The notes under the pieces: model-generated
The model's database searches: none
The model's input: the letters and a program-made list of their open reading frames with translations, nothing else
What the model was told of the DNA's origin: nothing
Source: Lepidodermella squamata
Lineage: Eukaryota > Animalia > Gastrotricha
Assembly: GCA_047495785.1 (NCBI GenBank)
Contig: JBLDXI010000074.1
Location: forward strand, 1,054,001-1,118,000
Direction: 5' to 3'
Length of the DNA: 64,000 nt
Part shown: piece by piece, positions 7,283-48,804 of the stretch
How the letters are laid out: every line of letters begins with the position of its first letter
Position numbering within the stretch: position 1 is the first letter of the stretch
Position numbers and translations under genes: made by a program

Positions 7283-7924
7283 TCAATGATGATGATGGTC
7301 GTGATCTCTGAAGAACCGATAACCGCAGTAGCCGCACGTGTGATTCCCAGGCTGGTCCTGAACAAATTCGCCGCGAAATTACAAAATCAATTAAACTTCA
7401 AAATTTTAAAAATCCTTAACAGGCAGAATTGTTTATGATTTTTCTCATCAATCTGAACAATCTGAAATTTTCAATAATATTTTGAAAATCAAATTCAAAT
7501 TTTTGAAAAATTAAAAAAGTTTTCAAACATTTCGAAACCATGAATTTTCGCAACTCTCAAAAAAATTCTAAGAAAAATATTTCATCTATTAAATTTCAAT
7601 GAAACGAACCAAATTGATGAAAACTTTCGGGTGCCCAAGCGGGCCGCCGCCGCCGTCGCACGACACGATGCGTGATTTCGACGCGATAGGCGCCGCCTCG
7701 GCGACCAGGTTGATGGCGAACTGCTTGTTGACGAGCTTTTCCTTGTTGACGAATCGCGCCATGCGCGGGTCGTTCGCCGCCCAGTGCTGGCCCGTGTGCG
7801 TCGGCACGTCCGCCTCGCGCTGCACGGCCTCGGTGACGCCGCTCGCCGTCGCCGTGGTTGCCGGCACTTTGGCGACTACTTTCGACGACAGGGCGCGGCG
7901 CGCCAACGCGAAACGCCAACTCAT
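7283..7924 (-). CDS. NDUFS6: NADH dehydrogenase Fe-S protein 6 (complex I 13 kDa Zn-finger subunit); exons 7924-7610, 7357-7283
   Basis: THTGQ, CDGGGGPLGHPKVFINL|DQPGNHTCGYCGYRF zf-CHCC motif; N-terminal mitochondrial presequence. Confidence 0.95.
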
Positions 7925-8149
7925 CTTTCAATAAAAAATTATCTAAAAATGCAGGTGAAATCAGTTTTAAAAATCGCAATTTTCAGCTCACTACGGCTCA
8001 CCAATGGTACTCGCAGAAAATTAAATCCCAATTCAGGTTCTAGGATTATTCTGGAAAAAGCATGAAGTAATTTTTCGAAGAATGAAAAATATAAAAAATA
8101 TAAATGAAAATCGGAAATCTGGAAATAAAAAAATTGGCTCTTTGAAATT

Positions 8150-8464
8150 AATAACAATAATAATTATTATTTATTTCATAATCAAAGCGAACTTTGAGGA
8201 CTAGAGGGGCATGCCACTTACTCTAGCCCTCGGTCTTATCGTAAGTGAGTGAGATTTCCGTACGACGGGATTCGACTGGTGCGGTCTAGCTGACACTCCC
8301 AGCCTCCCAATTTTCTATTTTGTATAACGCGATGGATTGGTAAAACCACCGCGCGGGGCCCAAGGGGCTCGATCCTGGTTCCGTCACTAGGACTTGAACC
8401 CAGTCGCGAGCGATATCCCCTCAGATACACAGCAGCTCAGCGACCCAACTGAGCCACCGTGCCT
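8150..8464 (-). mobile_element. tRNA-derived SINE
   Basis: A box TGGCTCAGTTGG (8456-8445), B box GGTTCAAGTCC (8400-8390), ~230-nt body, AT-rich tail. Confidence 0.65.
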
Positions 8465-45200: not shown

Positions 45201-48200
45201 TTGCAAAGCATGGAGCTACCCAATCGATATTGAACGAAAATGCACCTCAAAACCTTGCGCATTAGTATTGATTGATTGATCAAATCAAGATTGAAGTATC
45301 GGTACTTGAAAGTTAAGTCTTTTGACTATTACGGTTACACCTACAGTCAAATAATATAGCGCGAAAGCAGTTTCCACTGCGACCTGGGAATATGCTCGAA
45401 ATGTTTTGCGCTTTTTGAAACAGAGTTAAAGTCACGTTCGCTAATTTTTACGAACGTTACGCAGTATTCGGGGCGTTGTATGCGTGAAATTTCACGTAAC
45501 CCCGCTGTAGGAAGACGTCCAATGGCTAGTAGAAACAGCTTTAACTGAATTGGATCAGAATGTGTTATTCAATTGCAGTTCAACTGGTTATACGAAGCTA
45601 CCATTTTTGCGCGTTTTACCTAATGACCTGCTTGAATATTCATTGAAACTCGTTGTCCCCGAAAATTTAGCAATGTACGAAGATGAAATACCCGAGGCTA
45701 ATGCTTTCGTTCGGAAAAATATTCTTTATCTTGATTGAATAATACAAACTTTGGCGAAGAAATAGAAATAATTGATATATATTATTTCAGCAATTCACTA
45801 CAATAGCTTTACTACAGCGTGTCCTATAAGTTGCGTAAACAAAGAAAATACACGGAAAATGAGAGACCAAGTCACGTCTCACGGCCAGAAAAATGTTAGA
45901 AAAATCACAAGAGCAGTAATCAAGTATTTGACTTGAAAAAGATCAGTGCTTTGGATTTGATTTGATTTGATTTGGACCCTATTTTCACTGATTTAGATTT
46001 GAAATGATTGATTTACGCGGGGAAGCATTTTGATTTGATTGATTTTGATTTAGCCTTAGTGATGCAATCGAAAAACTTGATACCGCGAAACTAAGATATC
46101 TCCCCCTTTTTGATAAATAATTGCTTAAGAAAGGGATGGTGATTTCAAATTCGCGTTATTTTATTCCTTTCTTGACATTTCAAAACCCCCAGCTTCCTGA
46201 AAACCCCGATGTTTCGCGATTTATTGTGATTTATGGGTGTCGATGATTTGATTTGATTGATTTAGTCCTGGAAAATTGTGGCAATGATTGATTTTGATTG
46301 ATTGAAGGAGGTCCGTGATTTAAGCCGTAAATCAAATCAAATCAAGTCCAAAGCTCTGGCGAAGATGACTAGAAAGATCATAAGTCATAAGCTTATGTTT
46401 GAAAATAACAGAATTATTAGAAGATACTATATCGTTTGACAATTTATTCCAGATCGGAGCTAGTCGGTTTACAAATGAGAAGCGATATTGGTCAGTTCTT
46501 CAAGTTTGTATAACTAGTTTGAAGGAATTATTAGAACGAGTGACGTTAGAATTAAATTTTAGCTTGTCAGAAAGATTACAGCGAACTTCATTTTTTATAA
46601 TTTTGAACAGTAAGACCAGGTCAGCTCTCAAGCGTCCCAGTTCAAGAGATGGAATATGGAGCTGTTTTAGTCGTAAAGAGTGATACCGAAAATTACCATC
46701 GGGGTTTTCCGTGTTTTCTCCGATAACTTGAAACGCGCGTGGATCATGTAATGTTTTTCTCCTTAGGTTTAATTTGAAAAAAAGATAAGTTGAATTTGCC
46801 ACAAAAAGTTGCCAGATTAAAAAATAGTTGCGCAACTTCTGGGACACGCTGTATCATTCAGTTTTTGCCTCGTGCACGACTCGCGAATGGGCGCAATTAA
46901 AAGCAGGCTACCTATATTTATTCTCCTATTAATTTGAGAATATTTTGAAATTTTCAATTTTGCAAAATTGAAACAGAGGATTTCAATGTGATTTGTAGGC
47001 TGAAGTGGATCGTGATTGGCGGCGTGCGCGTGGTGCCGTGGTACCAGTCGCCGTACCCGGACGAGTACGTGGCCCTCGACACGCTGTTCGTGTGCGAGTT
47101 CTGCTTCCGCTACTACCGCACCGAGGCGACGTACCGCCGGCACCTGGGCAAGTGCGTGTGGCGCCACCCGCCCGGCGACGAGGTCTACCGCAGCGGCGAC
47201 GGCCACTCGGTGTTCGAGGTGGACGGCAACGCGGCCAAGGCGTACTGCCAGAACGTGTGCCTGTTCGCGAAGCTGTTCATCGCCAACAAGACGCTCTTCT
47301 ACGAGGTGGAGACGTTCCTGTTCTACGTGCTCACGAAGAACGACCCGCTCGGCTGCCACGCGGTCGGCTACTTCTCGAAGGAGAAGCACTCGCTCATGAA
47401 CTGCAACCTGTCGTGCCTGCTCGTGTTTCCTAGTCAGTCGCGCCGCGGCTACGGCAAATTTCTCATCGATTTCAGTGAGTTTTTTTTCTGCTGAAAATTT
47501 CTGAATATTTTATGTGGTGGGTGATTAATTAATTCCGATTCAAAATTTACCACACGGTCGTTTATTTCCGATATACTTATCAAACAATTTTGATAATTTT
47601 ATACGATTTTTCACCTGATTTTTGGCGATCTTTGGCGATCTTTTCAATTTTCAGTTTCACCCAATTTTGGGCCTAATTTTGAAAAATATGAACAAATGAT
47701 CGTCTGATTTTCAAACAAATTTCATGGAAAAATTGGTGGACCTGTAAAAATTGAAAACGAAACGCAATGCCAAATCTCCAGCCTGGCCATTTTCATTAAG
47801 TGAACATCTCTCACCGTAATCTATAATCGATATTACAAAACCTTTCAACTCGCTTTCTTGCCGAGAAAACTAATTATGCATTGATGTTAAAGCCTCAAAT
47901 TAGAAAAATTGTTAAAAATGAGGACTTTTGACCCAATACTTCGACCATTCGTTCATCGCTCTTCTGGAATCGGATTTTAGGATCGAGCATCTCACTTTCT
48001 CTAGTTGTTTTGTTCGAGTTCGAAACGGTGAAATGTTGATAATAAAGTTTTTGATTAAAATTGGGTTTATTATACACTCCAAAGAGGCTTTGGTTGAAAT
48101 CAGGATTAGCATTAATTTTTAACATTGAATAATTGTTAAACGTGTTGTTTTCTTGTTTTTCCAGGTTATTTGTTGTCTCGACTCGAGGGTCGAATCGGAT

Positions 48201-48804
48201 CTCCTGAACGGCCGCTGTCCGACCTCGGCCTGCTCTCGTACCGGTCTTACTGGAAGGAAGTTATTGTAAATTATCTCGCCGCTCGCATCGAATCCAAATT
48301 TGTCTCTATTAAAGGTAAAACCGCGTTCAGCAATTCGATAACATCGTTTACAAAATTCTTAATTTTTCGCCACCGTTTTTCTAAAAAATGTATTGAATAA
48401 TGAAATTGAAAGTGATGGAGGAAATTGATTTTTTTTATCAATTGAATTTCTGAAATATTATAGAAATTAATTTTTTGTTTTTAGATATCAGTGATGAGAC
48501 GGGCATCCACCGCAACGACATTGTGAGTACAATGCAAGTCATGGGCATCCTCAAGTACTGGAAAGGCCGCAACATCATCATGAAGCAGACGGAACTGGCG
48601 AAAGAAATCGCGAAACTGCGCGGCCACGCGTCGAAAAAGCACCACCACGGCCACCATTCGAATAAGGTGGTTCAGAATTTGAACGCGAACCAGCCCGAGT
48701 CGAAGCCCATCGACTGGCACGTGGACGCGGCGTGTCTGCGGTGGACGCCGCGCAACCGCAAGCAGAACTTCGCGCCCGGCGTTGCGGCGGCAACGGCGCC
48801 CTAA
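39261..48804 (+). CDS. KAT7: MYST histone acetyltransferase KAT7/HBO1/Chameau; exons 39261-39693, 42386-42681, 43751-44220, 46999-47474, 48165-48314, 48485-48804
   Basis: C2HC finger [20 protein letters not shown]; MYST domain [37 protein letters not shown]; phase-compatible junctions. Confidence 0.9.
39948..40235. mobile_element. hAT-type MITE related to 49481-49873 (degenerate left end)
   Basis: Right end CCCGTGGACAACTCTG identical to the 49.9-kb element; CGGGCCGGG subterminal repeats. Confidence 0.65.
40530..40800 (-). mobile_element. Helitron-like remnant
   Basis: [15 protein letters not shown] resembles the Helitron E..FP.LFP.G.GG motif. Confidence 0.45.
40986..41207 (-). mobile_element. 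pogo/Tigger transposase remnant (CENP-B type HTH)
   Basis: [26 protein letters not shown] matches the F.AS.GW..RF..R..LS.R..T motif. Confidence 0.75.
45944..46358. mobile_element. hAT-like MITE with GATTT repeat subterminal arrays
   Basis: TIR CAGWGCTTTGGAYTTGATTTGATTTGATTT at both ends; only a partial TSD (AAGAT). Confidence 0.75.
46420..46760 (-). mobile_element. CR1/L2-type LINE 3' end remnant
   Basis: [34 protein letters not shown], a typical ORF2 C-terminus. Confidence 0.7.

Follow-up and report, generated by a model that had tools for sequence, protein, structure and literature searches.

The stretch of Lepidodermella squamata DNA analysed here (64,000 nucleotides (nt) of compact animal DNA, ~43% GC, hereafter the window) carries ten genes in two runs which diverge from ~29.1–29.9 kb: NDUFS6, NOP9, a BCR-like gene (BCR), glycerol kinase (GK) and an FKBP6-like gene (FKBP6) on the minus strand, and UBA2, an ankyrin-repeat/SAM gene (ANKSAM), NOP10, HMGCL and KAT7 on the plus strand. 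Pfam matches and homology to a relative described below confirm all ten. The map drawn in an earlier, sequence-only reading, with five minus-strand genes on the left and five plus-strand genes on the right, head to head, is correct (Table 1). The last exon of NDUFS6 (near 7283–7360) contains the zf-CHCC domain with its CGYCG motif, and the BCR gene consists of four coding blocks with three introns of ~2.5 kb between them.

Table 1. Genes, acceptor-like sites and other features of the window (positions count from its first letter; bits are scores of the acceptor matrix described in the text; ORF, open reading frame; UTR, untranslated region; SINE, short interspersed nuclear element)
Feature	Position	Strand	Description and evidence
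NDUFS6	7283..7924	minus	two coding exons; ORF/translation, homology to NDUFS6 of the relative
CATTTTTAG acceptor-like site	7943..7951	minus	18 nt before NDUFS6 ATG; weak, 3.3 bits
tRNA-derived SINE-like insert	8190..8470	minus	A-box and B-box; inside the 1268-nt NOP9>NDUFS6 gap
NOP9	9193..12494	minus	two coding exons, ~1.4-kb intron; Pfam PUF_NOP9, tblastn with the relative
CAATTTTTAG acceptor-like site	12507..12516	minus	12 nt before NOP9 ATG; 9.4 bits
BCR-like RhoGEF-C2-RhoGAP gene	13508..24777	minus	Pfam, tblastn
TTTTTTCCTAG acceptor-like site	24818..24828	minus	40 nt before BCR ATG; 9.6 bits
Glycerol kinase (GK)	25773..27425	minus	single coding exon; Pfam FGGY_N/FGGY_C; 73% identity to the relative
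GK acceptor TTTTTATAG	ends 27455	minus	29 nt before GK ATG; 10.8 bits
FKBP6-like coding region (FKBP + TPR)	27568..29104	minus	Pfam TPR; coding intron 28390–28451 confirmed by RNA
FKBP6 5'UTR intron	29117..29165	minus	49 nt, cis-spliced; donor GTCTAT; RNA contig joint 29114>29164, cut +2
FKBP6 genomic 5' exon	29166 to at least 29268	minus	RNA contig
Divergent intergenic region	29269..29893		GC/CpG-rich patch 29505–29700; candidate bidirectional promoter
UBA2	29894..32241	plus	ATG 29894, stop 31847, poly(A) site 32241; Pfam, RNA
TATTTTTAG acceptor-like site	32278..32286 (AG 32285–32286)	plus	21 nt before ANKSAM ATG; 8.6 bits
Ankyrin-repeat/SAM gene (ANKSAM)	32308..34582	plus	Pfam; tblastn, start in the relative aligns at 32308
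TGACTAAC branch-point-like motif and TTTTATTTAG acceptor-like site	34751..34783	plus	46 nt before NOP10 ATG; 6.5 bits
NOP10	34830..35024	plus	single exon, 64 amino acids; translation, 87% identity to the relative
HMGCL	35671..38137 (ATG 35681)	plus	Pfam HMGL-like; span includes acceptor-like site
CAATTTAG acceptor-like site	2 nt before HMGCL ATG 35681	plus	9.4 bits
KAT7/MYST acetyltransferase	39193..48804 (ATG 39261)	plus	Pfam zf-MYST and MOZ_SAS; large introns; span includes upstream site
CCATTTAG weak site	60 nt before KAT7 ATG 39261	plus	0.1 bits

The stop-to-ATG gaps are 142, 995, 1013 and 1268 nt in the minus run (from FKBP6 to NDUFS6) and 460, 247, 656 and 1123 nt in the plus run (from UBA2 to KAT7). 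Three junctions are tight: FKBP6>GK, ANKSAM>NOP10 and, once the UBA2 3'UTR is taken into account, UBA2>ANKSAM, where 67 nt separate the poly(A) site of UBA2 from the ATG of ANKSAM. Spacing as short as that of operons (~1–250 bp, depending on the lineage; PMC7986045, PMC12460157) is found at two to three of the eight junctions.

The closest proteins in a large protein collection are encoded on metagenome contigs (the relative), with identities of 73% for GK, 63% for NDUFS6 and 58% for UBA2, against 41–53% for the next best named matches. On one contig GK, a second GK, BCR, NOP9 and NDUFS6 follow each other on one strand, with gaps of 368, 469, 212 and 75 nt, and on another UBA2, ANKSAM, NOP10, HMGCL and KAT7 do so with gaps of 99, 134, 124 and 184 nt. 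Order and strand are conserved between the two species for GK-BCR-NOP9-NDUFS6 and for UBA2-ANKSAM-NOP10-HMGCL-KAT7. FKBP6 is outside the conserved unit; in the relative GK is preceded by a leucine-rich-repeat gene and UBA2 by an Arf-like gene, with FKBP6 at neither place. Six of the eight cluster gaps in the relative fall within 75–212 nt, compared with ~530–650 nt elsewhere on the same contigs, whether the neighbours are divergent, convergent or on the same strand outside the clusters.

The two species differ in some details of these genes. GK is single in the window and tandemly duplicated in the relative (contig L001, 4221–8026), where the BCR gene also has far smaller introns and measures ~3.8 kb versus 11 kb. 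Beyond KAT7 the synteny reaches an uncharacterised ORF (54112–54477 in the window and 9403–9846 on contig L006 of the relative, 29% identity), so the conserved block may be longer than five genes. An exact protein look-up of NOP10 and a search with NDUFS6 exon 1 returned no proteins or RNA contigs of L. squamata itself from that collection, and a scan of JGI metagenomes with UBA2 for further relatives gave just distant eukaryotes, at no more than 52% identity over a fragment.

Most of the ten genes have a motif resembling a 3' splice site just upstream of the ATG. The best site within 60 nt upstream of each ATG was scored with a 14-position acceptor matrix. The matrix derives from 14 coding introns, of which two are confirmed by RNA and the others are credible frame-preserving introns of this species and the relative. 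Six of the ten genes reach at least 8 bits and eight at least 5 bits (11.0 bits for FKBP6 and 5.5 bits for UBA2; the others are in Table 1). The same 8-bit level is attained by 6% of random same-strand non-coding 60-mers (binomial 6e-6), by 15% of shuffled versions of these upstream windows (p 0.0014) and by none of the seven other, non-cluster ORFs in the window, while the antisense strand of the upstream windows scores far lower. Acceptor motifs are therefore genuinely enriched at about six to eight genes, and the sites of UBA2, NDUFS6 and KAT7 are weak. The sequence-only reading had placed such a site before every ATG: all the motifs that it quoted do lie at the distance given from an ATG and nine of the ten are correctly placed, the one at FKBP6 being refuted by RNA. 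In the relative a pyrimidine-rich TAG acceptor is found 8–43 nt before the ATG in most cluster genes, and seven of ten acceptors reach at least 7 bits, versus 31% of shuffles (p 0.012).

Could AGs in AT-rich upstream DNA, together with a random run of genes on one strand, simply mimic an operon? Almost any stretch of 60 nt will contain an AG at random, and the sites of KAT7, NDUFS6 and UBA2 are no better than background. Nevertheless, chance is a highly improbable explanation overall, as the enrichment stands against both random non-coding windows and shuffles, the same pattern recurs at the orthologues in a second species, order and strand are conserved in both clusters and one site, that of FKBP6, is proven to be a used acceptor.

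In the relative the distance from a stop codon to the next acceptor can be as short as 48–102 nt (48 nt from NOP9 to NDUFS6, 70 nt from UBA2 to the next gene), and because the introns observed are at least 49 nt long, a separate promoter with a 5' exon and an intron cannot fit there outside the upstream gene. This lack of room for a promoter, 5' exon and 5'UTR intron provides what we regard as the strongest argument, although an indirect one, for co-transcription and trans-splicing.

Two sequencing runs were placed on 6 kb in the centre of the window (27301–33300), one RNA-like, with introns removed and a poly(A) tail visible followed by cDNA-adapter-like sequence, and the other DNA-like, with even depth over intergenic regions. 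An RNA joint confirms the UBA2 intron 30123–30171. The poly(A) tail of the UBA2 mRNA begins at 32241, only 45 nt before the ANKSAM acceptor. A similar arrangement is found in the FKBP6>GK spacer (27426..27567, minus strand), where the AATAAA of FKBP6 (27517–27512) lies 57 nt before the GK acceptor.

The RNA also resolves the 5' end of FKBP6. The genuine start is the ATG at 29104; the second exon begins 12 nt before it, at the acceptor ATCTTCTTATTTAG ending at 29117 (the intron acceptor TTATTTAG), which is joined in the RNA to a genomic 5' exon across a 49-nt intron. The site proposed for this gene in the sequence-only reading, TATGTTCAG (29200–29208), is unused, as the RNA contig is continuous through it, and the ATG at 29183 opens just a 7-codon upstream ORF. 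An ordinary 5'UTR intron behind a genomic upstream exon is the very outcome which that reading had named as its refutation; among the ten genes, such joining of an upstream exon to the acceptor was observed for FKBP6 only, the one gene whose 5' end was recovered. The 5' exon includes a polymorphic (GGTAGTT)n repeat (29225–29260), one 7-nt unit of which, at 29232, is missing from the RNA run. Many mismatches separate the RNA run from the window, up to ~1% in the better-covered stretches, and it therefore derives from a different strain or haplotype.

The gene order, the spacing, the UBA2 poly(A) site, the motif enrichment, the synteny and the cis-spliced intron of FKBP6 are observed directly; co-transcription and trans-splicing are inferred. 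Two conserved same-strand clusters of unrelated housekeeping genes lie head to head in this species, with FKBP6 placed before GK, and most of their genes have a true 3' splice-site motif 2–46 nt before the ATG. On the most likely reading, many 5' ends in the lineage would be processed by spliced-leader (SL) trans-splicing, and the clusters would have arisen as operons. A precursor would run across neighbouring genes; the upstream mRNA would be cleaved and polyadenylated, and the downstream mRNA freed by splicing of a leader onto an acceptor that follows within a few tens of bases. This architecture may be intact in the window at FKBP6>GK, UBA2>ANKSAM and perhaps ANKSAM>NOP10, while genes across the remaining junctions of 0.66–1.27 kb may now be transcribed separately. 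That the clusters are, or derive from, trans-spliced operons which are still intact at the tight junctions is in our judgement an evenly balanced proposition. The divergent trans-spliced operons of the sequence-only reading find partial support, in that both runs are real, most ATGs have a 3' splice-site motif, three junctions are tight and the order is conserved; no leader was seen, and FKBP6 is cis-spliced.

Several observations weigh against the operon interpretation. Five of the eight junctions in the window measure 0.66–1.27 kb, and at the only acceptor with RNA evidence, that of FKBP6, the partner in splicing is a genomic 5' exon in cis. No leader-like non-genomic sequence is present at any 5' end recovered in the RNA contigs over 27301–33300, although, judged from the depth bins, the contigs of GK, UBA2 and ANKSAM begin ~50–80 nt into the coding sequence, and the 5' ends of these three genes are therefore outside the view of the RNA. 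The three loose ends in the RNA are a poly(A)/adapter end, an 11-nt end at 33157 that is probably an exon junction, and an end at 27355. The last was considered as a possible leader and rejected, since it matches the opposite strand nearby (27220–27248) and is a fold-back chimera. No RNA contig in the same 6 kb bridges two genes (FKBP6-GK or UBA2-ANKSAM), which is weak evidence because assembled contigs drop rare precursors. RNA depth differs 5- to 9-fold between neighbours (63 for FKBP6 and 7 for GK; 75–190 for UBA2 and 10–20 for ANKSAM). In the NOP10>HMGCL gap 12% of sampled words (a 641-nt stretch of the 656 nt) are present in the RNA run, a share that corresponds approximately to the length of a short 3'UTR. 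Finally, the 64-kb window gives no Rfam match, and its Sm-like motifs yield no convincing SL RNA gene candidate. The motif AAATTTTGG in a repeat that we call D6 was rejected as the Sm site of an SL RNA, as it belongs to a dispersed repeat. A dispersed repeat (8564–8671, 20541–20613) contains the Sm-site-like AAATTTTGGAA after 20-nt tandem units and, though it was not folded, does not resemble an SL RNA gene.

Most of these points would be accommodated if the genes were ordinary monocistronic units of a compact genome, with their own promoters, cis-spliced 5'UTR introns (~50–65 nt, weak donors) and inherited microsynteny. Neighbours of very different RNA depth are then expected, neither leader nor bridging RNA would be seen, the gaps of ~1 kb have room for promoters, and the sole 5' end seen, that of FKBP6, has exactly such an intron, 49 nt long with a GTCTAT donor and comparable in size to the coding introns (49–62 nt). 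By eye, and unscored, a GT can be found ~45–66 nt before several other acceptors (GTGAGC for NDUFS6, GTAAAT for ANKSAM and GTAATC for HMGCL). Donor scores upstream of the acceptors show no clear excess over controls (p 0.08), which tells against such introns; as proof that the acceptors are unpaired, however, donor scoring is uninformative, because the one proven donor is itself weak, and cis donors of this kind are possible on sequence alone. Short 5'UTR introns also cannot explain the 48–102 nt from stop to acceptor in the relative, too little for a promoter, 5' exon and intron, unless the 5' exons are inside the upstream gene. Likewise, a 5' exon of ANKSAM in the window would have to sit within the UBA2 3'UTR. 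An intron in nearly every 5'UTR would, moreover, be unusual, because coding introns are sparse. Taken together, we give the monocistronic explanation a real chance of being right, but one clearly below even.

What, then, of the centre of the locus? The sequence-only reading had proposed a single bidirectional promoter at 29.2–29.9 kb, from which two precursors of ~20 kb and five genes each would be transcribed and resolved by trans-splicing. The runs are indeed head to head, the intergenic region contains a GC/CpG-rich patch, no RNA contig covers 29301–29900, and the 5' exon of FKBP6 reaches 29268, so that its transcription starts there or beyond, within ~630 nt of the UBA2 ATG (a head-to-head spacing under 1 kb). 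Against this, the relative has no FKBP6|UBA2 junction, its two clusters being on different contigs with other divergent partners; the first gene of the minus run, FKBP6, has a normal cis-spliced 5' end; both runs are interrupted by wide gaps (five of eight), one of which contains a SINE and other repeats; and the NOP10>HMGCL gap is largely without RNA. As stated, the model of one promoter and two long polycistrons is unlikely.

The repeat-bearing gap is that between NOP9 and NDUFS6, which harbours a copy of D6 (8599–8671) as well as the tRNA-derived SINE. The latter accounts for the sole GC/CpG patch within a gap (8190–8470), and this patch was therefore rejected as an internal promoter. The other wide gaps have no repeat match within the window. 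Repeats are also found in introns. A second BCR intron holds another D6 copy, and BCR intron 1 holds a terminal-inverted-repeat element whose perfect 92-nt inverted repeats (22811–22902 and 24387–24478, 1484 nt apart) suggest a recently inserted DNA transposon. A KAT7 intron contains a 47-nt inverted-repeat pair (40247–40293 and 42105–42151) of the type flanking transposable elements. Outside the clusters, a second tRNA-derived SINE-like family with A- and B-boxes forms a 98% identical inverted pair (5907–6111 and 6202–6406) and recurs at 62322–62633. At 53293–53997 an interstitial telomere-like (GGTTAG)n tract (53864–53913) adjoins inverted arrays of 14/28-nt repeats (53425–53850). A tandem duplicate (56632–57499 and 60445–61316, 84–91% identity) includes an ORF of ~200 amino acids (56637–57239) without a Pfam match and has a 98% identical inverted partial copy at 58477–58738; it looks like a young lineage-specific gene family.

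Among known systems, the clusters can be compared with the nematode operons of the C. elegans type (resolved by SL2/SL1 trans-splicing). They share with these the same-strand runs of unrelated housekeeping, mitochondrial and ribosome-biogenesis genes, the pyrimidine-rich acceptor that follows a poly(A) site at a distance of some tens of bases, the short 5'UTR, the spacers of ~100 nt (in the relative) and the cluster order kept between species. Nematode acceptors read TTTCAG, whereas the acceptors here mostly end in TAG. Other differences are the several spacers of ~1 kb in L. squamata, protein similarity that is not nematode-like, and the leader and SL RNA gene, neither of which was seen here in the 6 kb of RNA and the 64-kb window, respectively. 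For scale, intercistronic distances in C. briggsae have a median of ~110 bp (PMC7986045). In the chaetognath Paraspadella gotoi, operons were annotated where two or more genes are separated by less than 250 bp and one or more of them has a spliced leader; trans-splicing affects about half of its genes, and its operonic genes are housekeeping or germline-biased (PMC12460157). On the spacing part of this definition alone, leaving the leader apart and bearing in mind that the lineage is a different one, six of the relative's eight junctions would qualify, as would two of the eight in the window. Flatworms, the proposed sister phylum of gastrotrichs (PMC6468455), trans-splice many conserved housekeeping genes (Schistosoma, Macrostomum), and few operons occur in those studied (PMC5832876, PMC8629364). 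Neither a leader nor an SL RNA gene of the flatworm type came to light here, where no test aimed at them was made.

Among animals, operons that depend on trans-splicing are scattered over several groups (nematodes, tunicates, flatworms, chaetognaths and rotifers), and it is still debated whether they originated many times (PMC12460157). Our literature search found no paper linking gastrotrichs with operons or trans-splicing, and the 2024 L. squamata genome paper (43% GC; sequenced with C. elegans, 102 Mb; public transcriptome used for annotation) makes no mention of either (PMC11660948). It is conceivable, at a likelihood only slightly below even, that L. squamata and its distant relative use SL trans-splicing genome-wide, with operons conserved over deep divergence. 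These would be the first operons described in gastrotrichs, and they may be shared with flatworms, as opposed to yet another independent origin. Annotation is affected as well, since in clusters of this kind gene finders merge genes or misplace their starts. A further phylum with conserved operon-like clusters would be an added data point for the debate, especially if gastrotrichs are the sister group of flatworms, and if the mechanism holds, a known kind of system would extend to a new phylum.

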